Of a stretch of DNA of 64,000 nt, positions 6,669 through 55,455 are shown piece after piece (the first letter of the stretch is position 1; the number at the start of each line of letters is the position of its first letter). The notes beneath the pieces are model-generated. The model searched no databases. It was not told the origin of the DNA and was given only the letters and a program-made list of their open reading frames with translations. The stretch is from the NCBI GenBank assembly GCA_052426225.1, contig JBNJNM010000021.1:2108001-2172000 (forward strand), read 5' to 3'. Made by a program: the position numbers and the translations under genes. This stretch comes from Zancudomyces culisetae HAW-14-8 (Eukaryota > Fungi > Kickxellomycota).

Positions 6669-9600
6669 CTATTTATCGCAATACTTCTCAATTCTACATT
6701 TATCATTTTTCAATCTAGCCTCCTCGCACAGAATGTTATTTATGGTGTCTGGTGGTGGTAACTTATCTCCTATATCTATATTTCCACAATAGTACTTAAT
6801 AGCCGCTTTATCGTTATCCTCTTTTGCCTTCTTACACAGGTTCTTAAATATCTCTTTTATTTTTTTACACGAATGTTTCTTATCCACAACATCGCGGCAG
6901 TATTTCTTGGCAAGTACATATCTCTTTCCCTTTATGGCAAGCGCACAAAGCACTCTATTTGTATCCGAGCATGGAGGATATTTGGAAATATCTGAAGGAC
7001 AATACTTCTCAATGTCCGCTTTGTTTTTTTCCTTTTTTGCTTTTTCACAAAGCTGTTTGTATTTGTTTATATGTGTAGGTGGTATGAATGGTCTGCAGTA
7101 TTTTCTTTTAGCTGCTACATCATTTTTTATGGCTGCTATAACACAGAGTATTTTGTATATTTCATCTATTGATGGAAGCTTGTCATCTTTATGGCTAATA
7201 TCTCGACAATATAGTTTGATTGTGCTAGGGTTTTTGGTTATTTGTGCGTACTTGCACAGATATTTATATATCTTTTTAATTGAGCAACCCAAACCTTCAT
7301 TTTTATCTGGTCTGCAGAACATGGCTATTTTTACCTTATCCTTCTGTAGTTTGCCCAAATGACATAGAATTTTGTTTGTATCATAACTAGGCAGTGGTGG
7401 GTTTGGAGGTCGAGGACAATACCTGTTTATGTTGTATGGGTTTCTTTCGATTTTGGCTTTTCTGCATAAAGTATCATAGTAGAACTTTTCGCTTGGTTTA
7501 TAGTCCCTGCAATACTTTTTAATTTTTGGATAATCCTTTGCGATTCTGGCCTCAATACACAGCATTTTGGTTATTTCACACAATGGAGGGTGGTTTGGAC
7601 CAATATCTGAAGGCTCTTTGCAATACTTTTTGATATCGCGACGATTTTTCTCTCTCTTGGCCTTCAGGCATAGGTTTGAGTAGACCTTATCGACAACAAT
7701 AACTGTAACTACGTTTTTACAATACTTTATAATGTTTTTAACGTTGTTTCGTGATCGAGCAATCGAACACAGTATTCGGTTAATTTGGGAAGTGGATGGT
7801 TTTCCAGCCGCCAATCCTGTACAATATCTCTTTATATCGACTTTGTTTCCAGAAATTTTGGCCGCACGACATCTTCTAAAGTACACGTCGTTTTGATTCA
7901 CAGAGTTTTTATCAACGCAGTACAGGCTAACGCCTTTTACATCAAAGCAGAGTTTGGAATTTTGACATTGTATTTTATAAAAATATTTTAGTGGAGGAAC
8001 CTTGATTTCGGTATTTTCTAGAGAAGCACAGAAGAACTCAATTTCAGCCTTGTTTCTGCTCTTTTTGGCTTCCGCACAGAGTTGCCTGTATATTTTTTTG
8101 ATATCAAGCAGCTTAGAGGAATTGTTTGTAAATTTCGGGCAGTAATTATCTATATCGGCTTGGGATTTTGACGCTTTTGCCAAAGAGCACATAAACCTTT
8201 CAACACTCTCTAGGGGAGGCTTAGGATTGCTTGAGGTATGACAGTACAGCATTTTGTTTTTGTTGTCACCACTTAACATGGCCTCAAAACACATTTTTGT
8301 GTACACGTTTTGACTATCTGCACTATTGAATATCGGGCAGTACAAACGCATTTTTTTCCGGTCATTTCTAAGCTTTGCCTCTACACACAATGCACGAATC
8401 ACCTCATCTTTCGAGATTGGTAACTCTGTCTTACGTGTTAGATCTCTGCAATATTGTGCTTTTTTATTATGGGCTTTTCTTGTTGCATGTTGACATAACC
8501 TTTTGTAAACATCCGTTATTATAAGATCAAGTTTTGTGTAATCAACACCCTTTCCAAGAAGACAGTATTTTCTAATATCTGCACTATCTCCGCTCATTCT
8601 AGCCAAGCTACAGTGTACTCTGTAAACATCTTTTATTTGTGGAATCGTTATTGAACCTACATTCACATTGTCGGGTTTGCAGTACTTTTCAATTCCTGAA
8701 GCATTTTTACTCTTCTTTGCATCTTTGCATTTGGTCTCATATGTATCAACCATTTTTTTATCTGATGAATCTAACATATCCCTATCCGCTACACTGCAGA
8801 AATGTGTTGTGAATGACTGGGCTCCTAACATAAATGCCTCTCTACATAAGATTGCTTCTAACTCTCTACGTGGAATAATTCTAAAAGGTTGTCCGACAAT
8901 TTCTCTACAATATGTTGCAGTAGCCTTGCTTTTGTTCTCTCTCTTTGCCTGTTTACATAGTTCCCCATATATTTTTACCAAAGGTGGGGGTTCAACCTTT
9001 ACTTTTTCCAACGGTTTGCAGTATTGGCTTATAGCATAATTGCTGGAGGATTTTAGGCCGAATCCACAAAGCACTCTAAAAATATGCACAACATGCATGT
9101 TTTTTTTTGGTCTTGGAACAATTCCCCTGCAGTACCTTTGCATTCTTCCGATATCATGTACGTATGATGCCTCCAGACACAGTCTGAGATACGGGTTCAA
9201 ATATCTAGCCTTTTTATCGAACCACGTACCATAGTCCTTAAAAGCAACCCTGCGTCTATTAACTCGGTCATTTTCGTCAGATATTGCCTGTAGAATGACT
9301 ATATCTGGGGTGGTATCAGATACCTGTATAATTTCGTTACAGTATATAGAAAGTCTATAATAGTCTAAAAAATTTTTTGCACGACCACACAAAGCTGAAA
9401 GAATTCGGTTTAGATTCATTGCTTTTGCAGATGCAATGTTTGCACTATTACAGAACTTTGATTTTGCATCCTTATTTTGACTTCTTAGTGCTAGGGCACA
9501 CTTAACCATAACTATCTTTGCCACCTGGTCATTTCCATGTGTTAGGGAATTTGGTGATAGCTCTGAATCCGTGTCTTGTGTCCCAAGAGAACCTAATTGC

Positions 9601-10397
9601 TCTAATGGGTTTTTCTCTTCCGCTGCACTCAAAGCTTCGACAAGAATATTATTGTACTTTTCTTGTTGATCATTTTCTGATTTTTGCTGTTGTTCTACTG
9701 CGTCACTTATCTTTTCTGAGTGTTGATTTTTCGAACCACTGTTTTCAGCGGATGTTATGCTATTCAGAGCATCTCTAACAGGCTTATTTGCAGCCATGTC
9801 TGCAGGGTCTTCGGTATACTCAACGAGCTTTAAATATTCTTCAATCAAACCATCTAGCTTGGCTCCGCTAAGCGGTCCGTAGTTATTCTGCTTCTGCACA
9901 TCACAGTACATTTGTTTGAGCTGTGTATTGTCTTGCTCTGTTGCTCTATTACATAGTCTTTGGTAGAGATAGTTAAGTGGAATATTATTTGTAGGTTCTG
10001 TTGTGTCATCCAAACAGTATATTTTTGATAGGTGTTTATTGTTATTTAATTTGCTCGATTCACAGTTTATTCTATCTGAAACGGCACTTTTTCGCATAGC
10101 CTCATCATAAGTAGGCTCAAATATTTTGTCATTAGTATATATTATCATGGCTCCCTCCGATTTTGTGTAGTTGCCATTGTGACTGATATCTACCTTTCCT
10201 GAATTTAATATTGAGGTGTCAACGGATACTGGTTCAATAGAGTTCCTTTTCTCATCTTGCCATGTATTTTTTAGACTCTTTGGACTAAAATCTCGGTTTT
10301 CGCTAAGATCATTGTGACTTTTATTTGTATTATCAATGGTTAGACACTCCGCGCCGAGTAGAGTGAAAGAAACCAATAATGATATATTTTTCAACAT
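6669..10397 (-). CDS. Secreted Cys/Lys/Tyr-rich tandem-repeat protein (28 x C-x15-C units), unknown function
   Basis: 1242-aa intronless ORF. N-terminal signal peptide MLKNISLLVSFTLLGAEC. Repeated YxxLCxxAKxxxNxxxIxKYC motif. No TM or GPI tail. Confidence 0.9.
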   Translation of the reverse strand: MLKNISLLVSFTLLGAECLTIDNTNKSHNDLSENRDFSPKSLKNTWQDEKRNSIEPVSVDTSILNSGKVDISHNGNYTKSEGAMIIYTNDKIFEPTYDEAMRKSAVSDRINCESSKLNNNKHLSKIYCLDDTTEPTNNIPLNYLYQRLCNRATEQDNTQLKQMYCDVQKQNNYGPLSGAKLDGLIEEYLKLVEYTEDPADMAANKPVRDALNSITSAENSGSKNQHSEKISDAVEQQQKSENDQQEKYNNILVEALSAAEEKNPLEQLGSLGTQDTDSELSPNSLTHGNDQVAKIVMVKCALALRSQNKDAKSKFCNSANIASAKAMNLNRILSALCGRAKNFLDYYRLSIYCNEIIQVSDTTPDIVILQAISDENDRVNRRRVAFKDYGTWFDKKARYLNPYLRLCLEASYVHDIGRMQRYCRGIVPRPKKNMHVVHIFRVLCGFGLKSSSNYAISQYCKPLEKVKVEPPPLVKIYGELCKQAKRENKSKATATYCREIVGQPFRIIPRRELEAILCREAFMLGAQSFTTHFCSVADRDMLDSSDKKMVDTYETKCKDAKKSKNASGIEKYCKPDNVNVGSITIPQIKDVYRVHCSLARMSGDSADIRKYCLLGKGVDYTKLDLIITDVYKRLCQHATRKAHNKKAQYCRDLTRKTELPISKDEVIRALCVEAKLRNDRKKMRLYCPIFNSADSQNVYTKMCFEAMLSGDNKNKMLYCHTSSNPKPPLESVERFMCSLAKASKSQADIDNYCPKFTNNSSKLLDIKKIYRQLCAEAKKSRNKAEIEFFCASLENTEIKVPPLKYFYKIQCQNSKLCFDVKGVSLYCVDKNSVNQNDVYFRRCRAAKISGNKVDIKRYCTGLAAGKPSTSQINRILCSIARSRNNVKNIIKYCKNVVTVIVVDKVYSNLCLKAKREKNRRDIKKYCKEPSDIGPNHPPLCEITKMLCIEARIAKDYPKIKKYCRDYKPSEKFYYDTLCRKAKIERNPYNINRYCPRPPNPPLPSYDTNKILCHLGKLQKDKVKIAMFCRPDKNEGLGCSIKKIYKYLCKYAQITKNPSTIKLYCRDISHKDDKLPSIDEIYKILCVIAAIKNDVAAKRKYCRPFIPPTHINKYKQLCEKAKKEKNKADIEKYCPSDISKYPPCSDTNRVLCALAIKGKRYVLAKKYCRDVVDKKHSCKKIKEIFKNLCKKAKEDNDKAAIKYYCGNIDIGDKLPPPDTINNILCEEARLKNDKCRIEKYCDK

Positions 10398-12000
10398 ATT
10401 TACTTTTCTTTTACCCCCCCTTATGGTTGATTATTTGTTCTGCAATCCTCTATATCTGAGTAGTATTATGTATTTGACTCAAAATCTGGCACTTAGAAAA
10501 ACTGGTAATACAAAAAAATAAGTCTTAATATTGTTCTTTGACTCCTGGCGTTTATTGATTTTTTGACTAAAGTTCTTTTATAGAGCATTTATAGCAACAA
10601 AAAAACAATTTTACTAAAGCTTATATCGCCTATTTTTCTATGTCAGATTTTCCACTTAGGAATGCCTCAAATAGTAACTTTGATCAACATTTAATACTCA
10701 AACGTTAATGCTAAATTTTCTAGACTGTTTGAACAAGTCGCTTGCTACTTTTTTTTAAAAATAAATTGTTATTAGGCATAAAACATAACTTTGGAAGCTG
10801 GACCATTTTGTAGATCCAAATTCACTCATGAAAGCAAGACATAACCTAAATGCAATAATATATTCCAGCTTTGTTCTGGGTCTAACATTAATTTTAGTTA
10901 TAACCTCTTTTTACTATGGTATAGTACTATGAATATCAATATTTAAGCTGCAATATATCTGGCACATTTCTTTTAAGGGCTCCTACTGGCTCTTTAGTTC
11001 AAGTATACCCCCATTTTTTGATAACTGCTTTGGTGCATAAATATCCAAAAAAAAAAGTAATGGAACCACAGGTGGTAGAACCAGAAAAGCAGCAATTGGG
11101 TGCTTGGTTGAGAAATTGAGTTTAATATGGGATCTAGCTCGCTTTTTTTATTTAGGATTTACCCCTAAAGTGTCTAGATTTTAAAGTATATAACAATTCG
11201 CCATGCTAGCCATAGGATACGCTTATATTGGATGAAAAATGAGGTATATCAGTATTGTAGTTCTAAATACAAAGTTATCCACATAATATTATCAGACCCT
11301 TGAAGGTGAATGGTGAAGTATTCTAACGTAGTTCCTTTTAATTATATCCTTGCCTCTACTGGTATGTGGTTGGTCATAAAACTTGCTTCTAGCCAATAGC
11401 TACTGTACGCAGTCTAGATTAGCGAAACTAAGAAAAACTAATTTTTTTACTGACCAATTTTGCGATAATATGGATAAGAAACTGAAAAGGATATTGAACT
11501 ACAGGTGAAGTGAGTGTTTGTGGAGTTGTATATTAACTAAGGTATATGTTTTACTGTGCAAAAGGCTTACATTTTTATCACTAACCGAGCTGTGGCATAA
11601 AAATAATGGTGAAAAAATAGCTGATTTGCCAAACTCTGCAATAGTATCCTGATAACTCCGGCTCAGAATGAAGTCGCCAAGAAAAAGGTAGTGTTATAAA
11701 AAAAAGTTACTTCATGTAATACTAAAAATAGAGTAGTATCATAATAGAGGTTATAATGTTATATATTGATCCAGAGAACATGAAAGTCATTTTTAGAGTA
11801 CCCTGAACTAAGAACTAAACAGAGTAACAGAAAAGCAACAAGTGAGAAGGTTGGTAATAAAAAACATTCATAGAGTTGAGGTGTACATACGACACAAAAT
11901 AATCAGGTGTACAAAAATTTACGAATTTACACATGGTTCCTATAATAAATGGTGTAGAGTAGATCATGTTTAAGCCATGGACGTAATATGACACGCTGTG

Positions 12001-12045
12001 TTACTACTGAGTAGTAAAAGTCGCATATACCCACTACTCAGCAGT
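12001..12045. other. Nested palindrome / 13-bp inverted-arm element near the outer end of the IR arm (mirror copy 28344-28388)
   Basis: ttactact-g-agtagtaa is a palindrome with a 1-nt centre. actactgagtagt (12003-12015) and actactcagcagt (12033-12045) are inverted arms with one mismatch and a 17-nt spacer. Confidence 0.75.
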
Positions 12046-12323
12046 CATATTTCGGCTTAAATGTAAAACCAGGCGCTCAAGCTTATGTACTCGAGTATAA
12101 ATCAGTTTATTGATTATTTAAATACCTAACCTAAAACAAACATCAGATACAAAATAAATCAATTATGTGACATTCAGATAATGCTAAAACATGTAAAATG
12201 CCAATGTGATGGTAATAGTCATAGTAATAGTCATAGTAATGGTCATAGTGTGTTGATGATACAGCGTTTCAAAAATCACACCCTCTCCATTCCCTTCTTC
12301 TTTTTGACTCATTCATTCTTTTA

Positions 12324-12686
12324 CTAAAGCCAGTAGTACAAGATTCTCGCTGAGCTGTAGTACTTGTATGTTGACCCCAATCTCTTTTGTAAGTGTGCCT
12401 GTTCTTCACTAAACATCTGGTCCAAGTACTGGACAACCTCTGCTGCCTTTTCTGATTTGCCTGTATCTGGTGACTGCATTTCCTCCTTCAACTTTGTCAT
12501 GATTGCACGATCACTGGCTGCTTCTCCGTTCCCAACCATAATTACTGGCACCATGTTTGAGTTTCCAGTAACTGGTGTGTCTCTTGGCAATCCGCTGTTG
12601 TCTTGGACATTGATTGGTGCCGCTGGCATAGAAAGCACCCCTGTAACCAATCCGGCGGTCATAAATGTAGCTGCTGAGATTCTCAT
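12324..12686 (-). CDS. Secreted prepro-peptide precursor, copy 1 (120 aa; Kex2-type KR site releasing an 18-aa Tyr/Trp-rich peptide)
   Basis: ATG in AAAAATG context. Signal peptide MRISAATFMTAGLVTGVLS, acidic pro-region, then LQKR|LGSTYKYYSSARILYYWL-stop. TATAAATA about 125 nt upstream. Confidence 0.85.
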   Translation of the reverse strand: MRISAATFMTAGLVTGVLSMPAAPINVQDNSGLPRDTPVTGNSNMVPVIMVGNGEAASDRAIMTKLKEEMQSPDTGKSEKAAEVVQYLDQMFSEEQAHLQKRLGSTYKYYSSARILYYWL

Positions 12687-12811
12687 TTTTGTGGTTTTTA
12701 CTTGAGTGTAGATGGTGTTTTGTATTGTATTGTTTTGTTTTGTTTGTATCAAACGGTTTTGTATCAATTGATATTGTGTGTAGATAATAAAATAAAGGAT
12801 GTAGTGAAGGG

Positions 12812-12819
12812 TATTTATA
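12812..12819 (-). promoter_or_regulatory. TATA box of peptide-precursor gene, copy 1
   Basis: TATAAATA on the minus strand, followed by an A/C-rich 5' UTR-like tract before the ATG. Confidence 0.65.
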
Positions 12820-12829
12820 TCTGTTTTGG

Positions 12830-12966
12830 ATGTATGTATATATTTGTATATGTGTATGACTATGTGTATATTTGTGTATATTTGTGTATGTGTATATTTG
12901 TGTATGTGTATATTTGTGTATGCGTATATTTGTGTATGCGTATATTTGTGTATGCGTATATTTGTA
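12830..12966. repeat. About 18-nt minisatellite (tatatttgtgtatgYg-type) immediately upstream of the TATA box
   Basis: Repeating gtgtatatttgtgtatg(t/c) units; mirrored at 27423-27559. Confidence 0.85.
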
Positions 12967-13193
12967 ATGCTATTTAATCTACATTTACTTTGCTTCTTAA
13001 AACTCAGTTCATATCTTAAACCATGTACTTTTTAAAAGATCATTGTACCTGTTCCTTGAAATTATCCACTAATGTTTTATAAAGGCATCTTTTAGACAAA
13101 CTGTTTGTGAGTAATGAAATATAACACATTGTATTCTCGATCCTTGTAACATTTTAACTTCCAAAGGTCTTTATAAGCATTGTTTCATTTTGC

Positions 13194-13270
13194 ACTTTCC
13201 ACTTTCCACTTTCCACTTTCCACTTTCCACTTTCCACTTTCCACTTTCCACTTTCCACTTTCCATTTTCC
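13194..13270. repeat. (ACTTTCC)10 heptamer array plus one degenerate unit
   Basis: Perfect 7-mer array at 13194-13263; mirrored as (GGAAAGT)n at 27119-27195. Confidence 0.95.
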
Positions 13271-14832
13271 TCAGTGTAATTTATCTACTACTATGTCCAT
13301 TTATATTCTTACCAAATCTTAGCTTTACCAATGACGTTTACTGGTTGAACTGCAGCAATCAAATGTGGTGGTTTTAAAGCCAGATAAAGTTTTGGTATTT
13401 AAAAAGGATCTTTGAAATTCTAAACCATCTTCAATTTCCATCACTTTTATAATGGGTCTTTTAATTTTGTGCAAAATACTAAGAGCTTTCTGTTTACATG
13501 TTTGGATAATTAAGGTTGGTAAATGGATGTGTATTTGGACTAAATAGCCATAACGAATACATTTATGGATTACAAAACACTTAGTATACAATTTTTGATC
13601 TGTTTCTTCCTTCAAAACACGTACTCGAGTGTTTCACCAAAGAATATCAAAAGTAGATCAGTGAATAATGGTTGGTAATTAATAACTAATGGTCAATGAG
13701 CTAGGATATGCACTAACAACCCAACAATATCTAACTCTTCTGTTTTTTTCAGTAACAAACTGATCCAAAAAATATACTTTTTCAAACAACCACCGTATCT
13801 ACAACCAGCATTTCAAAATGTATTCTGTGACTTTTTCTGCATTTTTACATGGTTCAAATCAACCAAGTACCAGAATACACACCACATTGAACGTTGTTTA
13901 GTAAACAACGATATTGGCTGAGGTAGTAGTTGATATACCTCATTTTTAATTTCTATCGTCACTAAAAAGTAGCAAACAACAGAAAATGAACAAAAAAAGT
14001 ACAAATGGACAAAACAAGATCCAATGCGCTACAACTACATACACTACTATTGAGAAATAGTCAAACATGAAATGGTATAGCATTAATGCCCAGACTGTAC
14101 TTTTATCGAGTGTTCTATTTACATGTTTGTATTTGAACATTATGCCATTTATTGGCTATCAAAACTGACAATATACTAGCAGTTAGTCATTATTAATGCT
14201 ATTATTATCACTCACAAACTCACAAACTCACAAACTCATAAAAATAGATACCACACAAATCTCCGAAACGCAGAGTGTGTCTGTAGTAATAGCGAAAAAT
14301 ACTGAATTGTAAGAGTAAAAAACTCAGGATTTATTACGACTGTGTAACATTTTGTACGCTTGTGATATAAAAAAGTCAAACAAAGCAAGGTATGGTATAA
14401 GAGTGGAAATGAGATGGGAATAGATAAAGGCAAATAGTATCATATCACCCAACACCAAGTTTACAGAGTAGAAGCGAGTGAGGTGGAATTCAATGATATT
14501 TCTATTAATGTGTCTGTCTAGAATGTCGTACAGTGGTGAATAAATTCACATATCGGATATCGAATATTTGTAGAGCTACTAATTGACCAATACGTATATC
14601 ACTCCTTTTCTTGGCTACATCTATACCCATGATATCCTTCTGATTAAGTAGCCTCTTGATCCCTTCTTTCATCGTTTTTAGCTTATTTCTCAACCAATAG
14701 TTTTAAACTCGATTTGTGATTTGAAAAATTTTGTCCTTTGATTTTGGTGCCCACTTTTTAATCTCGAATATCAAACCAAAACTCTCTTTTACACTCAGAT
14801 TCAGACCAAAATCAATAAAATACCAACATAAA

Positions 14833-23980: not shown

Positions 23981-26900
23981 CTTATTCCTTACCTATCCCC
24001 GCGCACTAATACCTATTTATTTATTTCCACACTCGTTCAACCTCGATGCATACCGCAGCAAGTTTGATTATTCTCTTGATCTTAAACTCTTGTTGTTTTA
24101 CATTTGAAAATGCTGGTGCTAACAACATGTTCTTTTCATATACTTGTTTGAGGAGAACAGTTTACGTTTATATTAATAATTATGATTATTTTACAATCGA
24201 CATGCATTTAATAGCGCCATAATATCTGCTTTAGCTGCACTTATTACAAATCCTCATATGATTCTATTGCCATACTTAAACTTTATTTCTTTCAATTAGC
24301 AATTTATAACTATTCCACCAATAACAGCCTAATAAGTGAATAGGTCCAAACTTATTCAATTTATTTATAAATAAGCAAAATACATATTCACCATGTGATG
24401 AGATTTGAGGAAACAACTTGCAATTGGCAATAACCCTAATATCCCCACCAGTCACTCTTTTATCTGTGGATTATACATACATTTTATGAGTATATTCAGC
24501 TTTTCTATAACTTCTCACAACTTTCCACACTCAAACCTACACAAAATAATGAAAATTAGCACACCAATACAATACTGCTATTTTTCACCATACAGATCGC
24601 ATCGATTATTATTTACACTCAGGTTCTACCCAATTTATCTTTTTTTGTTCAAAAAATAATTTAATTTGGTAATAAAATACCCAAAATCAAACAAAATGAT
24701 AATACATCTAGCTTTTTGTTTCGCTGAACTAACCCCTCTCCCTCCTCTCTACCCATTCATGAATTTCATCATTACCACCACCACCGCCTCCCCCAAAAAA
24801 AAGATTAGTGATAAAAATACCAAAAGTGTTGTATCACTTTAATAACTGCTGTTATAAGCGCAGAGCTTGCTATTTTACCTCCTCCTCCCAAAACTTTTCA
24901 TAGTTACATGGCTTTTGTACTGATATCTCCACAAAAGACGTCTCTAGTTACCAACGTTTGCTTTGGCTTTGGACACTAAACAAATAAAAACTACACTTCT
25001 AGTTTCACACTGATTTTTTTTTCGCCATGGAGCACGTATAGCTCATTTGCTTATTTGCCGCTATAACAACAATAAGCAAGAGTAATAACTTTTTTTTTTT
25101 ATCCATCATCTTACTTTCATGTTACTAGAAATACTCTTTCGGAAATCGTCAGCTTGAATTGGTACCTTTATCCCATTTGTGATTATCGTTTCCTGTATCA
25201 TAAAATTTTACTTACAAGTAAACACATTAAATCCATAATAATCTCATTTTTTACATCAATTGATTGAAAAAAACAGGCAAGCTATAAGCCCACTTTAACT
25301 GAACCCAGATGACAATAACAGTCTGCCCAAGGATTATCAATTCATAGTCCTGTATTAAAATATATGGACGTGATCGAAAGCGACATATCACCCATTAAAT
25401 AATAAGCATCCAGATAATCTATTCATCTAAATGTATAAGGATTGAGAATAATGCTATAACCTGAGTATCATTTTCAAAAATAAAAGACGGATGTCTATTT
25501 TTCAAAGCTTCACATAAAAACTGCGAAGAGCCCCAAACTACATTATGTTCATTAATTTTCTTGATCAAATTTACGCAAATAGTAAAAAATTCTGTGTTTA
25601 GATTGGCTTGTTTATGAAATCTAAAAAAATTATGCCAGATTACTCCACATGGCTGAAAGTGCTAAAATTGCATTGAAAATAATAACAACATCAATTTAAA
25701 ATAGCTAATGCCCAACCGTTCCTAGTGAGAGTCGGGAATTTCTAAAATAATAACAAAAACAAATAATTGAATAGTCAAAAAAAGGAGTGATATACGTATT
25801 GGTCAATTAGTAGCTCTACAAATATTCGATATCCGATATGTGAATTTATTCACCACTGTACGACATTCTAGACAGACACATTAATAGAAATATCATTGAA
25901 TTCCACCTCACTCGCTTCTACTCTGTAAACTTGGTGTTGGGTGATATGATACTATTTGCCTTTATCTATTCCCATCTCATTTCCACTCTTATACCATACC
26001 TTGCTTTGTTTGACTTTTTTATATCACAAGCGTACAAAATGTTACACAGTCGTAATAAATCCTGAGTTTTTTACTCTTACAATTCAGTATTTTTCGCTAT
26101 TACTACAGACACACTCTGCGTTTCGGAGATTTGTGTGGTATCTATTTTTATGAGTTTGTGAGTTTGTGAGTTTGTGAGTGATAATAATAGCATTAATAAT
26201 GACTAACTGCTAGTATATTGTCAGTTTTGATAGCCAATAAATGGCATAATGTTCAAATACAAACATGTAAATAGAACACTCGATAAAAGTACAGTCTGGG
26301 CATTAATGCTATACCATTTCATGTTTGACTATTTCTCAATAGTAGTGTATGTAGTTGTAGCGCATTGGATCTTGTTTTGTCCATTTGTACTTTTTTTGTT
26401 CATTTTCTGTTGTTTGCTACTTTTTAGTGACGATAGAAATTAAAAATGAGGTATATCAACTACTACCTCAGCCAATATCGTTGTTTACTAAACAACGTTC
26501 AATGTGGTGTGTATTCTGGTACTTGGTTGATTTGAACCATGTAAAAATGCAGAAAAAGTCACAGAATACATTTTGAAATGCTGGTTGTAGATACGGTGGT
26601 TGTTTGAAAAAGTATATTTTTTGGATCAGTTTGTTACTGAAAAAAACAGAAGAGTTAGATATTGTTGGGTTGTTAGTGCATATCCTAGCTCATTGACCAT
26701 TAGTTATTAATTACCAACCATTATTCACTGATCTACTTTTGATATTCTTTGGTGAAACACTCGAGTACGTGTTTTGAAGGAAGAAACAGATCAAAAATTG
26801 TATACTAAGTGTTTTGTAATCCATAAATGTATTCGTTATGGCTATTTAGTCCAAATACACATCCATTTACCAACCTTAATTATCCAAACATGTAAACAGA

Positions 26901-27569
26901 AAGCTCTTAGTATTTTGCACAAAATTAAAAGACCCATTATAAAAGTGATGGAAATTGAAGATGGTTTAGAATTTCAAAGATCCTTTTTAAATACCAAAAC
27001 TTTATCTGGCTTTAAAACCACCACATTTGATTGCTGCAGTTCAACCAGTAAACGTCATTGGTAAAGCTAAGATTTGGTAAGAATATAAATGGACATAGTA
27101 GTAGATAAATTACACTGAGGAAAATGGAAAGTGGAAAGTGGAAAGTGGAAAGTGGAAAGTGGAAAGTGGAAAGTGGAAAGTGGAAAGTGGAAAGTGCAAA
27201 ATGAAACAATGCTTATAAAGACCTTTGGAAGTTAAAATGTTACAAGGATCGAGAATACAATGTGTTATATTTCATTACTCACAAACAGTTTGTCTAAAAG
27301 ATGCCTTTATAAAACATTAGTGGATAATTTCAAGGAACAGGTACAATGATCTTTTAAAAAGTACATGGTTTAAGATATGAACTGAGTTTTAAGAAGCAAA
27401 GTAAATGTAGATTAAATAGCATTACAAATATACGCATACACAAATATACGCATACACAAATATACGCATACACAAATATACACATACACAAATATACACA
27501 TACACAAATATACACAAATATACACATAGTCATACACATATACAAATATATACATACATCCAAAACAGA

Positions 27570-27577
27570 TATAAATA
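27570..27577 (+). promoter_or_regulatory. TATA box of peptide-precursor gene, copy 2
   Basis: TATAAATA about 125 nt upstream of ATG 27703. Confidence 0.65.
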
Positions 27578-27702
27578 CCCTTCACTACATCCTTTATTTT
27601 ATTATCTACACACAATATCAATTGATACAAAACCGTTTGATACAAACAAAACAAAACAATACAATACAAAACACCATCTACACTCAAGTAAAAACCACAA
27701 AA

Positions 27703-28065
27703 ATGAGAATCTCAGCAGCTACATTTATGACCGCCGGATTGGTTACAGGGGTGCTTTCTATGCCAGCGGCACCAATCAATGTCCAAGACAACAGCGGATT
27801 GCCAAGAGACACACCAGTTACTGGAAACTCAAACATGGTGCCAGTAATTATGGTTGGGAACGGAGAAGCAGCCAGTGATCGTGCAATCATGACAAAGTTG
27901 AAGGAGGAAATGCAGTCACCAGATACAGGCAAATCAGAAAAGGCAGCAGAGGTTGTCCAGTACTTGGACCAGATGTTTAGTGAAGAACAGGCACACTTAC
28001 AAAAGAGATTGGGGTCAACATACAAGTACTACAGCTCAGCGAGAATCTTGTACTACTGGCTTTAG
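27703..28065 (+). CDS. Secreted prepro-peptide precursor, copy 2 (identical to copy 1)
   Basis: Same translation as 12324-12686. Confidence 0.85.
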   Translation: MRISAATFMTAGLVTGVLSMPAAPINVQDNSGLPRDTPVTGNSNMVPVIMVGNGEAASDRAIMTKLKEEMQSPDTGKSEKAAEVVQYLDQMFSEEQAHLQKRLGSTYKYYSSARILYYWL

Positions 28066-28711
28066 TAAAAGAATGAATGAGTCAAAAAGAAGAAGGGAAT
28101 GGAGAGGGTGTGATTTTTGAAACGCTGTATCATCAACACACTATGACCATTACTATGACTATTACTATGACTATTACCATCACATTGGCATTTTACATGT
28201 TTTAGCATTATCTGAATGTCACATAATTGATTTATTTTGTATCTGATGTTTGTTTTAGGTTAGGTATTTAAATAATCAATAAACTGATTTATACTCGAGT
28301 ACATAAGCTTGAGCGCCTGGTTTTACATTTAAGCCGAAATATGACTGCTGAGTAGTGGGTATATGCGACTTTTACTACTCAGTAGTAACACAGCGTGTCA
28401 TATTACGTCCATGGCTTAAACATGATATACTCTACATCATTTATTATAGGAACTATGTGTAAATTCGTATCTTTGGTACACTTTACCATTTTACGAGATT
28501 AGTGACCTTATCACCTTTCTGACAATTTTTTCCCGAATTGAATTTCTGGCATTTCAAACCTTTACCCCGCTTTATTTGTTGTCTCCACTTTTCCAAAAAT
28601 AAAGGATACAACCCAGCCAAGAAACCAAAAATTGTATTCTATTTAAATACTTATTGTTTCTCTTTTGGTTTGCGTTTTAAAGCGCCAAGGCTCAATGTTA
28701 GTATCGTACAA

Positions 28712-45655: not shown

Positions 45656-48600
45656 TTATGACTGTTTAGCTTTTTTAAATCCCCCAACTGTATATTGGCA
45701 AAACTCAACCAATTCTTGATCATCTAGTTCGTTCGCAACTTTTATGATCAATTCAATATGCCTACTTGTGTCAATACCATGTTTAATCAACAGTTTGATA
45801 ATTTCGACATTTTTATGTTTGATAGCCTCCTTTAACCCGTATTCCTTTTTTAGTACCAAATTCGGATTTCTTTCCAACAAGAGTTTTAGCATTTCCAAAT
45901 TGTTATTTGTACACGCCCAAACCACTCCACTACCACTTCCCCTTTTTATCTTTACCCCATTTTCAAATAACAGCTTCAGAAATTCTAGATTATTATTTCT
46001 ACAGGCGTAATATACGAAATCCAATTCGTTATTTTCAAGCGTAGTCGTATCTTTCAATAGCAATTTAGCTGCCTCTAGTTTGTTTTTCTCGATAGCAGAT
46101 TCAAGTAAGCGAGAGAATCCACCAATCTCAGGGCAATAATTCAACATTAGCTGAATAGTTTCAATGTCATCTAAATCAAAATAATAATACAATTTATGTG
46201 ATCCACTTTCTACTTTTGCACCATTTTCCAATAATAGTCTGAACATCTCTGCATTTTTTGATTCAAGTGCTATATCTAGAATACTAGTGTTACCCTCTAC
46301 ACTGATTCCACTCTCCAAAAGTAGTTTTACTGCCTCAACGTTTTCTAATTGTACGGCGAATTCCATTATTTTAGAATGATGATTGGGATTGATCTTATAC
46401 GTTAACAGTAGATTCAATAATTCAATATTAGATACAGTAATTGCTGCCTTTATCCCATATAACAAATCGCTATTATCCATGGACATACCCTTTTCAAGTA
46501 AGATTTTAGTAATCTTGTATTCATCAAAACAACCACTATTATTATGGCTCAAAGGTGAATAATGTTGTAATTCTCCTTCCTTTGTATTTGTGTTGTCTTT
46601 TTTCTCTAACACCCCCAAACCAACATAATACTCTAGAATCATTTTTATCATCTCAATATCCTCAGTTAAACGAGCATAATCTAATTGGTATCTACAAATA
46701 TTCCCCGCCTCAGCATTATTATCCAAGAGGTATTTCAGTGTTCTCTTGAGACCCAATCTACATGCAACCCTGACCCCATTCAGTTCTGGGTTACTCAAAT
46801 CAACTCCATTTTCTACCAACCATTTAATCATATCAAAGTTACCCAGTATACACGCAACGTTAATACACTCATATTTTGGGTTATTGGGCACCACACCACC
46901 ATTCTTGATCCAATGTTCCAACACTTCAACTTTATCCGATTTACACGCCTCCTCAAACCCATCTGATTCTCCGTTTAGTTTTGCACCTTTACCGATAAAA
47001 TAATCAATCCAACCAATATCACCTGCTTTGTACGCTGTCCTTAAGATCAAACTATTCTTCGTATTAATATCAACTCCATACTCTATCAATAGTTTTAAGA
47101 TTTCAAAGTTTCGATTCACCAGCTCTGATTTTGCTAGCTCGTAATGCCTATCATTCAACACCTCTATGTTGACTTTGTATCCAAATTCGTTAATTTCGTC
47201 ATGTTCAGTATATTCGAATGGATTTTGCAGATTATTCTCAATAATATATCTAATGATTTCGAGTAATTCTTCATAACAAGATTTTCTTTCTTCAACCATA
47301 TGATTATAAGAAAAAAGTTTTTCGAAATATGAGTAAATAATCTCGAACGTTTTTTTCCTCCTTGAATTCACAATTGCTATTACGTTTTCGAATAAATCCA
47401 GGTATTTAAAAGAAATATCAAAATCGACACCATTGTGAACAAACTGGCATCTGAAATCCTGACAGGCTTTAATAAGACATATAATTGTTTTACTAAACCT
47501 CAGCCTTGTCCCAGTCTTGGCCAGGCTTTCTGAAGTTTTGGATTTAGTTTTTTCGTCGCTTAAATTTGAGATCTCTAATAGCCGTTTCGCTATGTCATAA
47601 TTTTTAATACTGCATAGCTTTCCAATAATATGTTGAACCTCAGATTCATCCAAATCATTATACCCACCCCATGACCGTAGATTATATAAATAGCTATATC
47701 CGTATGTGATTCTTACTTCCTTATACTCTAGTGATTTTAAATTCACTCCACCTTCGATAAGTTGTTTTATAATTCTAGTATCCCCAATCTCTATCGCTTT
47801 CCCTAAACAAGAAACATTCATTGTATTTGGATATTTACTGATGATTTCTTGTACCAATTCGTAGTTCTTGGTTTTTATCGCTGTTTTTAGAGCATTTTCA
47901 TCCAGATCTCCCTTCAGCTTATCGCTATTTATTAAAAGCAACTTAACAATACCGACAACGCCTCTACGGTATGCCATTTCCGTTAGTTTTCTAATATTTC
48001 CCGGGTTTAGTTCGACTTTGAAAACATATTCTTGTACCAAACTGTCATATCTATTATAAACCGCTGCATCGAAAAATATCTGTGAGTATCTACTACCAGT
48101 GTAGCTATCCTTAAGGAATTTTATCAACTCTTTCTCGTTCCAGTGAATAGAATGAAATGTACATATCATATAAACTAACAAATCCATTTTATCTGCATTT
48201 CCATAATCCATAACAAAATTATTAAACTCCGTATCATAGGAATCACCGTAGGAGTTTGTAATTGATTGTAAATCCTGAAAAGAGAAATTTGTGTTGATTT
48301 TCACATCCAAAAGCTGTTTTAATAGTTCAAGGTTGTCCAAGTCAACTATTACTTCTCCAGCAGTGAATAAACAGTATAATAAAAATTCTTTACCTACACA
48401 AATAATATCCCTTTCAAAGGAACCACATATTTCAGGAAAAAACTCAAATCTGGTGTTGCAGATATCTAATAACATTTTGACATCTCTTTCTTCAGAAATA
48501 TCTAAAATTTGATACTCCAAATCCATTGAGTTCCCTCGCACCCTGAATAATGGTCTTACATAAAGTGATTCAGATATATCGATATCATTTTCCTCTCTTC

Positions 48601-49075
48601 GTGATTCATTTCTTTCTGAAAATAAACCGCTAATATCAATATCCAGGTGCTCGCCCTCGTTCATAAATAATGTGCCCTTGTGCACAACCGCTGAAGTATT
48701 TCTATCGATTACAACATACATTTTGAGCAATTTGTTTAGTATGTTTGTCCATCTGTATTCGAATGCTATATCTAGAGCGGTTTCATAGTCCAAACCCTTG
48801 ATTTTTCTAAATACAAGTATTCCAACGATTTCATTCATGTTTATTCTGGTGTATTTCTCGAATATACTTCGTAACTCCGAATTAAAACTATGTTTTGTAA
48901 TGGATAAAATATATTGAAGTATGTACTTACAAACAGTGTCTACCTGCTGCGAGGCATAGTGCATGTTTTTGTTCAAGAGTGATAACTGGGGGTTTTGGGC
49001 AAGCACAAATACGGTGGACAGAATGCTTGCTGGAAGTTTGTTGAAAACATTGTGTTGGTTGTTTGTGTTATCCAT
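45656..49075 (-). CDS. Intronless N-terminal F-box-like plus multi-ankyrin-repeat protein (1139 aa)
   Basis: FNKLPASILSTVFVLAQNPQLSLLNK at the N-terminus. Many degenerate ankyrin units (e.g. ACRNNNLEFLKLLFENGV, EAIKHKNVEIIKLLIKHGID). Confidence 0.88.
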   Translation of the reverse strand: MDNTNNQHNVFNKLPASILSTVFVLAQNPQLSLLNKNMHYASQQVDTVCKYILQYILSITKHSFNSELRSIFEKYTRINMNEIVGILVFRKIKGLDYETALDIAFEYRWTNILNKLLKMYVVIDRNTSAVVHKGTLFMNEGEHLDIDISGLFSERNESRREENDIDISESLYVRPLFRVRGNSMDLEYQILDISEERDVKMLLDICNTRFEFFPEICGSFERDIICVGKEFLLYCLFTAGEVIVDLDNLELLKQLLDVKINTNFSFQDLQSITNSYGDSYDTEFNNFVMDYGNADKMDLLVYMICTFHSIHWNEKELIKFLKDSYTGSRYSQIFFDAAVYNRYDSLVQEYVFKVELNPGNIRKLTEMAYRRGVVGIVKLLLINSDKLKGDLDENALKTAIKTKNYELVQEIISKYPNTMNVSCLGKAIEIGDTRIIKQLIEGGVNLKSLEYKEVRITYGYSYLYNLRSWGGYNDLDESEVQHIIGKLCSIKNYDIAKRLLEISNLSDEKTKSKTSESLAKTGTRLRFSKTIICLIKACQDFRCQFVHNGVDFDISFKYLDLFENVIAIVNSRRKKTFEIIYSYFEKLFSYNHMVEERKSCYEELLEIIRYIIENNLQNPFEYTEHDEINEFGYKVNIEVLNDRHYELAKSELVNRNFEILKLLIEYGVDINTKNSLILRTAYKAGDIGWIDYFIGKGAKLNGESDGFEEACKSDKVEVLEHWIKNGGVVPNNPKYECINVACILGNFDMIKWLVENGVDLSNPELNGVRVACRLGLKRTLKYLLDNNAEAGNICRYQLDYARLTEDIEMIKMILEYYVGLGVLEKKDNTNTKEGELQHYSPLSHNNSGCFDEYKITKILLEKGMSMDNSDLLYGIKAAITVSNIELLNLLLTYKINPNHHSKIMEFAVQLENVEAVKLLLESGISVEGNTSILDIALESKNAEMFRLLLENGAKVESGSHKLYYYFDLDDIETIQLMLNYCPEIGGFSRLLESAIEKNKLEAAKLLLKDTTTLENNELDFVYYACRNNNLEFLKLLFENGVKIKRGSGSGVVWACTNNNLEMLKLLLERNPNLVLKKEYGLKEAIKHKNVEIIKLLIKHGIDTSRHIELIIKVANELDDQELVEFCQYTVGGFKKAKQS

Positions 49076-49843: not shown

Positions 49844-50902
49844 CTAAAACAGTAAAACCAATACCAATGATAAGAGCATCACCAATTTGAATCCGGTATT
49901 TTTCAAGATAGTCGAGGCAGAAGGTGCATAATCATAACGTCCCGATAAATTGGTAATCGTTGAGTAGTCAGGAGAGGGCCGAGCGGTTGTATTTAATAAG
50001 TACGACTTTTCAAGTCCTGTGACACTTACAATCCAGTCAATGTAGCTGTATACATGGGTATAATAATTCGTCACAGCACTTTCTGGACGAATATCAGCAC
50101 CACTCTCAGATCTACCTATGTTACTCGCAACACCAACAAGTAAATTAGCTCCATTATTCATGTACGCCAAGGGGTTTCCTCCATCTTCATATGCCGAACT
50201 TTTGCCATCCTTTACTAGTGTACAGATGAGGTTTTTGTTGTTATCAGACCAGTTGGGGTTGAAATTTTTACAAACACTTGAAGAAGAGGGTGATTGTATA
50301 GCTGTATTTAGTTTATCATTTGGTAAACCTGATATCCCAGTCGAAGTGAGACCCCAACCCGCTGTGACCAAATCCATATCATCCGTTACATTTCCACTGT
50401 AGATCGCTACTGGTGTGAACATATCTTTTAATACTGGAGAATTCAATTCCATAATTGCTATGTCACTTTTTAATGACTCGGGAGAAAACTCAGGATGATA
50501 ATATACTTTACGTGCTGAATATGCAGTACCGCGAGTGTATTTTGTTGTTTCAATATCAATGGAAATATATATTTGCTTAGAATCTTGCACTAATTTGCCT
50601 TGATTGTCTAAGAAGCAACTAGCTGCAGTTACTGCTATTTTGTTAGATAATAGTGAAATACTACATTTTAATGAAGATCTTTCCATGTACACGTCCATTC
50701 TTCCAATATATGGAAAATCTTCTCTCTTTGCTGGTTCCCCATTTAGGATTCTCGCATTGTTAATACGATTATTCACTCCGTTCTGTGATATGCCAGTATT
50801 TGTGTCTACATTTTCAACTGAGGAACCGTGTACAGCTGCAATACCCCCAAGCGATAGTGCTGTGAGGATATGTTTACAAAGTGATTTGTTGTTCAATTTC
50901 AT
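49844..50902 (-). CDS. Trypsin-like (S1) serine protease homolog, probably non-catalytic, secreted with a GPI-type tail
   Basis: Signal peptide; R|ILNG activation site; TAASC in place of TAAHC; SDIAI; AGWG; YEDGGNP in place of GDSGGP; YYTHVYSYIDWI; hydrophobic C-terminus. Confidence 0.88.
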   Translation of the reverse strand: MKLNNKSLCKHILTALSLGGIAAVHGSSVENVDTNTGISQNGVNNRINNARILNGEPAKREDFPYIGRMDVYMERSSLKCSISLLSNKIAVTAASCFLDNQGKLVQDSKQIYISIDIETTKYTRGTAYSARKVYYHPEFSPESLKSDIAIMELNSPVLKDMFTPVAIYSGNVTDDMDLVTAGWGLTSTGISGLPNDKLNTAIQSPSSSSVCKNFNPNWSDNNKNLICTLVKDGKSSAYEDGGNPLAYMNNGANLLVGVASNIGRSESGADIRPESAVTNYYTHVYSYIDWIVSVTGLEKSYLLNTTARPSPDYSTITNLSGRYDYAPSASTILKNTGFKLVMLLSLVLVLLF

Positions 50903-53028: not shown

Positions 53029-55455
53029 TTATCGTCCAAAAATTCCTACCAGTACACGCACTTCTAACTGATTTTGACGAACGCCTTTTATCGCAGCATT
53101 GTTATCCAAAAGATATTTCAGAATCCTCTTGAGACCCAACCTAAATGCGACTCTGACTCCATTACGCTCTGGGTCACTTAAATCAACTCCATTCTCTACC
53201 AATGCTTTAACCATACCAAAGTTACTCAATAAACATGCTCTGTTAATGCAGGAACGTTTTGGAATCTTTGGTACCACACCACCATTCTTTATCCAGTATT
53301 TCAACACATCAACCTTATCTGATTTACAAGCCTCCTCAAACCCATCCGATCTTCCACTAAATTTCGCACCTTTACTGATAAAGTAATTTATCCAATCAAT
53401 ATCACCTGCTTCGTATGCTGTTTTCAAAATTAGACTATCAGCTGAATTGACATCCATTCCACACTCTATCAATAGTTTAAGAAATTCAAAGTTTCGGTTC
53501 ACCAATTCTAATTTTACTATCTCATAGTGTCTATCATTCAACATTTCAATATCATTTTCGTGTTCCAACTCATTAGATTCATCGTATTCTGTATCATTGA
53601 ATACGCTTTGCGGATTATTTTCAATGATATAACCTATAATTTCAACAACTTTATAAAAACGGGCTCTTATATCATCTTCTGGTATTATGAGAGCGGAATA
53701 TACCGATAAATACGACAAAATAAAACCAATGATATCTTTTCTTTTTGAGTTTATCTCTACCATTATATCCAAATATAAATTCAATTGTTCGAAAAAGTCC
53801 TCGAATCCCACATATCTACTTGCATAGGGGTCGCAATCACGCAGAGATGCCCAAACGAGGCATAGAATTGTTTTGTTGAATTTGGGTCTCTTTACAGCCT
53901 TGGTCTTGCTTCCTACAGTTTTGGTTTCAATTCTATTTTTCCACATATCTGAAAACTCAAGTAGTCGCTCCGATATTTCATAATTACAAACATAACATAA
54001 CCCTTCAATGGTCTCTTGTGCGCTTGAGTTAACAGAGGTACCATTTTCCAAGAGCAACTGTAGCATATTCATATCTCTATTTCTGCTAGCAAATACAATT
54101 CCCTTGAACTCTGGTGATTTTAAATCTACTCCAGCTTCGATACCCGATTTGCACAGGTTAATATTACCCAGGCGTACTAGATCGTGTAAAATAGCAATAC
54201 TCACCGCATTTGGATGCTTTTTGATAGTTTTTTGTGCCAATCGATAATTTTTTTTCTTTATAGTGATTCTCAGTGCATTCTCATCTAGGTCCCCTTTCAG
54301 TTTATCATTGTTCTCTACCAAAAGTCTAATAAGTTCGATACTATCCAGTCTATATGCTAATTCTGTTATTTTTCTGATATTTTCCGAGTTCAACTCCACA
54401 TCGAGCATATATCTTTTTACTAAACTTCCCTTTTTGTGGTGTATAGCTGCATCGAATAGTATCTGTTTGTAGGTGCTATTGGAGTAATTATCCTCAAGGT
54501 ATTTTATCAGTTTTTCCTTTTCCCAATAAATCGAAAAGTATGAGCATGCAATATAGACCAAAAAATCCATTTTAGTTGTGTATCCATATTCATCAATAAA
54601 ATTAACAAGTCTCCAAAATGTGTCAGCGTAAAACTCATTTTTAATCCGTTCCAGTCTCCGAAAAGAAATAGATGCATTGGTTTTCAAATCCAAAATCCGT
54701 TTTAACTGCTCAAGGTTACCCAATTTGCAGATTTTATCTGTGCACTCCAATATGCAAAATACCATAAATACGCTATCAATAAATTTAGCCTCCCTCATAA
54801 CAGTACTGTATAATTCTTGAGGAAGCTCAATATTGCTACAGCAAAGGTCTACCAAGGCCTTCACATTCTCTTTATCAAAATCTTGATCTGAGTAGTGTAA
54901 GTGTAGCCATAATTCCTTCAGTGTCGCTACTAGTGGCCTTATATAAAGAGATTCAGATATCTTGATGTCTGTCAAATTTCTTCGAAATTCGTTTTTTCCT
55001 GAGAATAAACTTCTAAATTCAATGTCGAGGTACTCTCCTTCTTCTGTGAATAAATTACCCTTATGTACAACCGTTGAAGTACTCCTGTCAATCACCACAT
55101 ACATTTTGAGTAGTTTATTCAGTATGTTTCTCCACTTGTACTTGACTGCCAATTCTAGAGCAATTCCATAGTTCAAGTTCTTGATTTTACTCAGAACTAG
55201 CATTCCAACGGTTTCATTCGCACTAATTCTGGTGTATTTATCGAATATACTTTTTAAATTCGATTCAGGGCTGTCTTTTTTATTTGACAAGACATATTGT
55301 AGTATGTACTCAACAACAGTTTTCACTTTTTGAGAGACTTTGTACATATCTTTGTTCAAGAGTGATAGTTGAGGGTTTTGAGCAAATGCGAATATAGTCG
55401 ACAAGATACTTGCTGGAAGTTTGTTGAATACATCGTCGTTATTGTTGTTATTCAT
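53029..55455 (-). CDS. F-box-like/ankyrin paralog, truncated at 808 aa
   Basis: Colinear with 45656-49075 (FNKLPASILSTIFAFAQNPQLSLLNK; GFEEACKSDKVDVLKYWIKNGGVVP), then shifts frame after NQLE. Confidence 0.8.
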   Translation of the reverse strand: MNNNNNDDVFNKLPASILSTIFAFAQNPQLSLLNKDMYKVSQKVKTVVEYILQYVLSNKKDSPESNLKSIFDKYTRISANETVGMLVLSKIKNLNYGIALELAVKYKWRNILNKLLKMYVVIDRSTSTVVHKGNLFTEEGEYLDIEFRSLFSGKNEFRRNLTDIKISESLYIRPLVATLKELWLHLHYSDQDFDKENVKALVDLCCSNIELPQELYSTVMREAKFIDSVFMVFCILECTDKICKLGNLEQLKRILDLKTNASISFRRLERIKNEFYADTFWRLVNFIDEYGYTTKMDFLVYIACSYFSIYWEKEKLIKYLEDNYSNSTYKQILFDAAIHHKKGSLVKRYMLDVELNSENIRKITELAYRLDSIELIRLLVENNDKLKGDLDENALRITIKKKNYRLAQKTIKKHPNAVSIAILHDLVRLGNINLCKSGIEAGVDLKSPEFKGIVFASRNRDMNMLQLLLENGTSVNSSAQETIEGLCYVCNYEISERLLEFSDMWKNRIETKTVGSKTKAVKRPKFNKTILCLVWASLRDCDPYASRYVGFEDFFEQLNLYLDIMVEINSKRKDIIGFILSYLSVYSALIIPEDDIRARFYKVVEIIGYIIENNPQSVFNDTEYDESNELEHENDIEMLNDRHYEIVKLELVNRNFEFLKLLIECGMDVNSADSLILKTAYEAGDIDWINYFISKGAKFSGRSDGFEEACKSDKVDVLKYWIKNGGVVPKIPKRSCINRACLLSNFGMVKALVENGVDLSDPERNGVRVAFRLGLKRILKYLLDNNAAIKGVRQNQLEVRVLVGIFGR

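Follow-up and report, generated by a model that had tools for sequence, protein, structure and literature searches.

A duplicated orphan gene of Zancudomyces culisetae predicted to encode a secreted precursor of a Tyr/Trp-rich 18-residue peptide

Does a 120-codon open reading frame (ORF) that occurs in two copies in the fungus Zancudomyces culisetae encode a secreted precursor from which a short peptide is cut, and what might such a peptide do? The species belongs to the Harpellales and inhabits mosquito guts. Members of this order grow fixed to the lining of the hindgut in larvae of mosquitoes, black flies and midges, and we know of no molecules established as those by which they attach or deal with the host and with gut bacteria. 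An earlier note, made from the letters of a 64,000-nt stretch of contig C21 (the window), had proposed that the ORF specifies a prepro-peptide from which an 18-residue C-terminal peptide (the 18-mer) is released as a pheromone, a host-directed peptide, an antimicrobial or a tyrosine-crosslinked RiPP. We followed up this proposal in the window and in the rest of the genome. The PacBio-HiFi assembly of strain HAW-14-8 comprises 27.2 Mb in 26 contigs (PMC12611240), and our searches covered 27.1 Mb in 25 contigs.

The plus strand of copy 1 translates into stops, and its minus strand gives a clean ORF of 120 codons that ends in TAG (Table 1). The earlier note thus had the coordinates right and left the strand unstated. 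It had also reported two identical copies; they are identical, and they are inverted rather than direct, a point on which it was silent. Both copies lie in an inverted repeat of 2,703 nt, the arms of which are 100% identical and are separated by 11,154 nt, and both point outwards, off the segment between the arms. Each arm extends 409 nt past the stop codon and 1,931 nt ahead of the ATG; the latter agrees with the duplicated upstream DNA of about 1.9 kb described before. We ruled out a transposon as the origin of the arm because the arm has no other occurrence in the genome.

Table 1. Coordinates of the gene, its parts and related loci. Positions are those of the window unless a contig is given.
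Feature	Position	Strand	Second copy (strand)	Basis
Copy 1, 120 codons and stop (ATG at 12686, TAG 12324-12326)	12324..12686	-		Translation and codon usage
Copy 2, same ORF, sequence identical	27703..28065	+		Sequence comparison
Left inverted-repeat arm, bears copy 1	11915..14617	.		Perfect repeat, found at this locus alone in the genome
Right inverted-repeat arm, bears copy 2	25772..28474	.		Perfect repeat, found at this locus alone in the genome
Putative signal peptide, codons 1-19, predicted cut after V-L-S	12630..12686	-	27703-27759 (+)	Hydropathy and -3/-1 rule, inspection
Acidic Cys-free pro-region, codons 20-102	12381..12629	-	27760-28008 (+)	Charge, dibasic site
L-Q-K-R closing the pro-region	12381-12392	-	27997-28008 (+)	Residues 99-102
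Tyr/Trp-rich 18-mer, codons 103-120	12327..12380	-	28009-28062 (+)	Composition by shuffling
TATAAATA, 126 nt upstream of the ATG	12812..12819	-	27570-27577 (+)	Octamer match
AATAAA, possible poly(A) signal, 213 nt past the stop	12106..12111	-		Consensus match only
Tyr/Gly-tail family loci L044-L054	C8:37.5 kb, 54.6 kb; C9:61 kb; C13:27 kb; C16:64 kb; C21:33 kb; C22:30 kb; others			
Tyrosinase-domain frames	C8:1369156, C8:1440700, C10:39092, C23:79292, C11:2176867, C11:4685916, C23:652047			

Four copies of the gene are present in the assembly: two on C21 (in the window) and two on C20, a contig of 85,847 nt that is collinear, in reverse, with window positions 6971-63992 at 98-99% identity. C20 is probably an allelic haplotig left in the assembly, or else a segmental duplication of very recent date, so that each haplotype actually has two inverted copies. 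The arms on C20 differ from one another by ~1% plus indels, and those on C21 are identical, so the inverted duplication is not an assembly artefact. The identity of the C21 arms also suggests that they were homogenised by recent gene conversion between them. A single copy is present in the older short-read assembly of strain COL-18-3 (GCA_001969505.1), on a contig that stops 340 nt past the stop codon, and this fits what is expected of a collapsed repeat. The same 120-residue product is found, at 98% identity, in the public annotation of Z. culisetae as the hypothetical protein AX774_g3895.

A few further features of the region were noted. With C20 in the assembly, each gene of the region appears in twice as many copies. 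The 11.15-kb segment between the arms, which contains genes for mitochondrial L4 and an R3H-RRM protein as well as membrane-protein exons, is oriented alike in C21 and C20, without evidence of flipping. Adjoining copy 1, and in the same orientation, is an ORF of 1,242 residues (6669-10397, minus strand) with a signal-peptide-like N-terminus, many Cys-containing repeats ('KYC' motifs) and no credible Pfam match. Two ankyrin-repeat genes (45656-49075 and 53029-55455) are diverged direct paralogs, 74-80% identical over sampled stretches, with repeats at 46711-47010 and 53094-53393 that lie 6,383 nt apart; between the two genes sits one of the trypsin family (49844-50902). Rfam and tRNA scans of the window returned nothing.

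Five alleles of the ORF were available for comparison, four from this assembly and one from GCA_001969505.1. The frame is preserved in all of them, and none has an indel or a stop; the upstream DNA, by contrast, showed 24-75 indel columns in the same comparisons. Within the ORF seven nucleotides vary, three of them synonymous and four nonsynonymous (T7A, A11V, S31N and G54E), a divergence too low for dN/dS, and substitution divergence in the ORF (0.5-1.4%) is not below that of the flanks. All seven variable nucleotides fall in codons 6-54. This leaves at least 202 consecutive nt without variation (p about 0.025), which is suggestive, the variable sites being few and linked.

The predicted product is 120 residues long and contains neither Cys nor an N-glycosylation sequon. 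Its first 19 residues include one Arg and a moderately hydrophobic stretch of 16 residues, and end in V-L-S before Met20, with a hydropathy of 1.1-1.5 across residues 1-25. Judged by eye from hydropathy and the -3/-1 residues, the signal peptide claimed in the earlier note is plausible, and we infer that the product is secreted. Residues 20-102 comprise 12 acidic and 8 basic residues (net charge -4, pI 4.8) and close with LQKR. The KR of this motif, at residues 101-102, is the one dibasic site of the protein, as had been reported. The 18 residues that follow, LGSTYKYYSSARILYYWL, have a monoisotopic mass of 2246.14 Da and a pI of 9.3, and match the earlier description of five Tyr, one Trp, a net charge of +2 and no Cys; they hold five of the six Tyr residues of the protein and its only Trp.

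The earlier note had also stressed an abrupt switch in composition between pro-region and tail. Six of the last 18 residues are aromatic, a clustering that was reached with p = 3e-4 upon shuffling and with p = 7e-3 when any 18-residue window was allowed, so the compositional break at the tail is real. It coincides with the change in net charge from -4 to +2. The lone KR, on the other hand, does not exceed chance: 31% of shuffles contained at least one KR or RR, and 9% contained exactly one that left a tail of 8-40 residues. An AlphaFold2 model built from the single sequence had a pLDDT of 44, with helices at residues 56-70, 75-103 and 112-119, which fits a protein that is unstructured or loosely helical. 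Of the acidic helical pro-region proposed before, the acidic part therefore holds, and the helical part appears at low confidence.

Could the tail be released? In the motif recognised by Kex2, Arg at P1 is invariant, Lys or Arg is preferred at P2 and Leu or another aliphatic residue at P4, and Asp at P3 is unfavourable (PMC8528282). L-Q-K-R satisfies this extended motif fully, with Arg at P1, Lys at P2 and Leu at P4. The Leu at P1' is tolerated by Kex2, with middling to poor secretion of some reporters in Pichia (PMC3777899). The genome encodes one kexin (C15:1059841-1062081), which has Peptidase_S8 and P_proprotein domains and matches the yeast Kex2 structure 2id4 with E = 4.6e-144, so that both the motif in the protein and the protease in the genome are present. 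The predicted LQKR site should be accessible because Cys is absent from the protein and the model shows no confident fold, and an accessible LxKR in an unfolded protein in transit through the Golgi makes a good substrate for kexin. Provided that the protein is secreted, we consider cleavage at LQKR somewhat more probable than its absence.

The reading that we place first, and hold tentatively, is that of a real gene, restricted to Z. culisetae and kept in two copies by the inverted duplication, whose small, Cys-free and largely unstructured product is a secreted prepro-protein cut by kexin at LQKR. The signal peptide would be removed at about residue 19/20, and kexin would then cut in the late Golgi after L-Q-K-R(102). 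This would yield an acidic N-terminal fragment of ~81-83 residues and the basic Tyr/Trp-rich 18-mer, and both fragments would be secreted.

A different fate for the same protein has to be weighed against this. The product may act intact, as a small secreted orphan protein of an effector-like or wall-associated kind, in which the KR is incidental or uncut and the aromatic tail is a C-terminal segment for binding or anchoring, for example to chitin or cuticle. The frequency with which shuffled sequences contain a dibasic site (31%) is in keeping with this, as is the P1' Leu, which is not optimal. Moreover, the invariant stretch of the alleles covers codons 55-120 as a whole and not the 18-mer specifically, and the helix modelled at residues 75-103 spans the site, albeit in a low-confidence model. 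What speaks for cleavage instead is the combination of a kexin encoded in the genome with an LxKR that would be accessible in an unfolded, Cys-free secretory protein, and would thus make a good substrate (PMC8528282). We regard action of the intact protein as the main rival, a possible outcome although a doubtful one.

Both of these readings require that the ORF is a gene. Codon-usage scoring, trained on 11 clear genes of the window, gave 0.41 bit per codon (log-odds) for the sense frame, compared to at most 0.15 for the five other frames and 0.16-0.33 for the training genes, and ranked the ORF first among the 34 ATG-initiated ORFs of 80-200 residues in the window. The TATA box described in the earlier note was found, as TATAAATA, 126 nt before the ATG; octamers of this type occur 16 times on both strands of the window. 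The leader (12687-12811) is free of ATG and ends in AAAAATG, an A-rich start context. Splicing that replaces the C-terminus, named earlier as a result that would overturn the proposal, finds no convincing donor: the sole plausible GT..AG pair begins within the stop codon and would alter Leu120 alone, to Leu-Tyr-Ile-Ile, with a net gain of three residues. A look-up of transcripts by the exact protein in public or Logan assemblies matched the NCBI genome contig and nothing else.

Several tandem arrays accompany the gene. Those at 12831-12965 and 13189-13270 are mirrored in the other arm; the upstream arrays include a 16-nt unit repeated 8 times that closely precedes the TATA box, and TTTCCAC repeated 11.7 times, and the allele indels lie mostly in the upstream region that bears such arrays. 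An open frame of 115 codons upstream of the ATG was dismissed as an artefact of the 16-nt array, which is free of G, and contains no ATG. In the 3' UTR, a 12-nt unit, TATGACTATTAC on the strand of the gene, is repeated 3.2 times (12212-12249, mirrored at 28140-28177). Read as coding sequence, (TATGACTATTAC)x3 gives YDYY repeats in another frame that is unconnected to the ORF, and the presence of such an array beside a gene for a Tyr-rich peptide is probably a coincidence.

Searches for relatives of the protein found none outside the species. A word-indexed search of 5.8 billion proteins matched the species' own protein alone, and an exhaustive phmmer search of 1.84 billion representative proteins gave the same protein as its sole credible match; the second match, an ankyrin-repeat protein (P0002), was spurious, a stretch of 21 residues having been matched seven times. 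JGI metagenome contigs held no homolog, and searching the Z. culisetae genome with the whole protein and with its last 23 residues revealed no further relative. Pfam, searched at E values up to 10, returned no family, MF_alpha_N (PF05436) and MF_alpha (PF04648) included. The protein is thus an orphan, known from Z. culisetae alone in the protein and metagenome databases searched, and the earlier failure to recognise a known family is borne out.

An orphan of this size could also be a non-functional ORF, a chance or decaying frame, annotated solely by ab initio prediction, in a young duplicated segment. Such a frame would be expected to look as this one does in lacking homologs among the 1.84 billion representative proteins and any Pfam match even at E = 10, in giving a poor structural model (pLDDT 44), and in diverging by 0.5-1.4% while its flanks diverge no more. 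It would hardly be expected to have the top codon-usage score of its size class, and that in one frame specifically, to remain free of indels and stops in five alleles with indel-rich flanks, or to possess a TATA box, an ATG-free leader and an N-terminus shaped like a signal peptide. We consider a non-functional frame unlikely, and conclude that the ORF is most likely a real gene.

If the 18-mer is released as we propose, what might it do? A comparison within the species bears on this. Searching loosely for KR with Tyr-rich sequence after it gave noise, with the control matching as often. A 17-nt motif from a loose search occurred 11 times in the genome compared to 0 times in the control, and most occurrences lie no more than 65 kb from the start of a contig. 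Each occurrence marks a near-identical copy of a gene of 141-144 residues, giving at least 11 copies (for example L044:1144-1560, plus strand), which we call the Tyr/Gly-tail family. In its members a signal peptide leads into a Pro-rich stretch and YRKR; next comes an acidic spacer closed by DDR, and last a tail of ~40 residues that lacks Cys and is ~50% Tyr, with Gly, Pro and Trp. All of its database relatives are from Z. culisetae (AX774_g6556, g730, g2535, g6360 and g439). One diverged member (P0008) has two modules delimited by basic sites, and its first Tyr-rich segment is flanked by DDR and RKR, an arrangement that is the hallmark of a polyprotein.

The 18-mer gene resembles this family in being restricted to the species, in its length (the two fall at ~120-145 residues) and in its predicted combination of a signal peptide, a basic site, an acidic region and a Cys-free Tyr/Trp-rich tail. 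In contrast, the family has multiple copies, most of them close to the ends of contigs, while the 18-mer gene has a housekeeping neighbourhood; the family tails have ~40 residues and ~50% Tyr plus Gly, compared to 18 residues and 28% Tyr; and the family tail comes after DDR, the KR being placed ahead of the acidic spacer, whereas the 18-mer directly follows KR. We did not assign the 18-mer gene to the family (signal peptide, YRKR-ADEEEE spacer, DDR-WWYG tail), as no homology was detectable by BLASTP (E = 34), hhalign (probability 0.2%) or Smith-Waterman alignment, where the scores fell within shuffles once corrected for multiple tests, and no promoter elements common to the two were found. By analogy rather than membership, the family nevertheless raises the prior that Tyr-rich secreted peptides matter in Z. 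culisetae. Because the 18-mer resembles these Tyr-rich tails in kind, its likeliest role may be that of an extracellular Tyr-rich peptide, in self-assembly, as wall or holdfast material or as a substrate of tyrosine oxidation; a role as a pheromone or RiPP seems less likely. The genome also contains at least seven intact open frames with a tyrosinase domain, none near the locus (Table 1), and tyrosinases are potential oxidisers of Tyr-rich secreted peptides.

The functions suggested in the earlier note fared less well. A membrane-active antimicrobial or cytolytic precursor, built like those of candidalysin and animal antimicrobial peptides with an acidic pro-region to mask the cationic peptide, would suit the charges (-4 in the pro-region, +2 in the 18-mer) and a gut habitat crowded with bacteria. 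However, the hydrophobic moment of the 18-mer is no higher than that of shuffles, 66% of which score at least as high as a helix and 26% as a strand. The 18-mer is therefore not amphipathic beyond shuffles, which argues against a classical lytic or antimicrobial peptide, and it is also short, with a charge of just +2 and a low mean hydrophobicity. We find this reading very improbable.

A role in signalling through a receptor, as a mating pheromone or another peptide of the alpha-factor or Qsp1 type, has slightly poorer prospects still. Its attraction is the prepro architecture, with LxKR directly before a short C-terminal peptide, and the nearest neighbour in the ESM Atlas, a cluster of MF-alpha precursors at 0.80. 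That resemblance was rejected: it is below threshold, shuffled proteins reach it a third of the time, and no usable match is left once the signal peptide is removed. There is no match to MF_alpha_N or MF_alpha in Pfam, and a six-frame search of the genome for the receptors STE2 and STE3 found neither, although the controls were near-silent (none for STE2, one below the cut-off for STE3). The absence of these receptors, like that of UstYa below, is weak evidence because the controls themselves gave no match above the cut-off. We know of no peptide pheromones in zygomycete lineages.

The least probable reading is a dikaritin-like precursor of a tyrosine-crosslinked RiPP: a Tyr-rich core does follow KR and tyrosinase genes do occur in the genome, but dikaritins have UstYa/DUF3328 and an oxidase beside a repeat precursor, and here there is no repeated core, a genome-wide six-frame search turned up no UstYa/DUF3328 (its control likewise silent), this contig has no tyrosinase match, and the window, with genes for PMT, mtRPL4, R3H-RRM, LRR, ADH, WD40, RRM, G6PD, ankyrin and trypsin proteins, is without a tyrosinase, P450, methyltransferase or other tailoring gene.

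Returning to the kexin-cut precursor, a highly codon-optimised, duplicated, species-specific gene for a predicted secreted peptide is a reasonable candidate for a component of the host interface. It would join a wider pattern of Tyr-rich, protease-released secreted peptides in Z. culisetae. The peptide is short enough for synthesis and mass spectrometry, and RNA-seq of the species exists, so these ideas are cheap to test. As a long shot, Z. culisetae might secrete a kexin-released Tyr-rich set, made up of the 18-mer and the Tyr/Gly-tail family, that tyrosinases crosslink into holdfast glue or wall on the mosquito hindgut cuticle; alternatively, the 18-mer might act as a secreted signal, and would then be the first such peptide described for a fungus of zygomycete grade.

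How does the predicted precursor compare with known systems? KEPs are repeated peptides separated by Kex2 sites (PMC7329392), with alpha-factor, Ece1/candidalysin, Rep1 and MiSSP8 as examples of Class 1 (PMC7329392, PMC8528282), and a survey predicted nine of them for Z. culisetae (Umemura 2020). The product described here is like them in its putative signal peptide, Cys-free pro-region, LxKR site and short peptide predicted to be released. It is unlike them in having one site, at residues 101-102, and one peptide, and no sequence or Pfam similarity, the profiles of the yeast alpha-factor precursor family (PF05436 and PF04648) being among those without a match. Because it has no internal repeats, it is not a KEP.

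K2PP effectors carry the Kex2 motif in the first half of the protein, with a folded domain next (PMC8528282). The product shares with them predicted secretion and an N-terminal pro-domain that is unstructured and closes with a Kex2 motif. It differs in that 82% of the mature chain is pro-domain and the motif lies at residues 99-102 of 120, with 18 residues and no folded domain after it, and we did not count it as a member.

Cryptococcus Qsp1 also comes from a small secreted precursor, with one active short C-terminal peptide per precursor, which ends in an aromatic residue; its maturation is extracellular, by Pqp1, and not at a KR site. The precursor predicted here is likewise small and has a single short C-terminal peptide, but this follows a KR site and the sequences are unrelated. 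The sequence is new, and the architecture is familiar, as that of fungal Kex2-type secreted peptide precursors or of small secreted orphan proteins.
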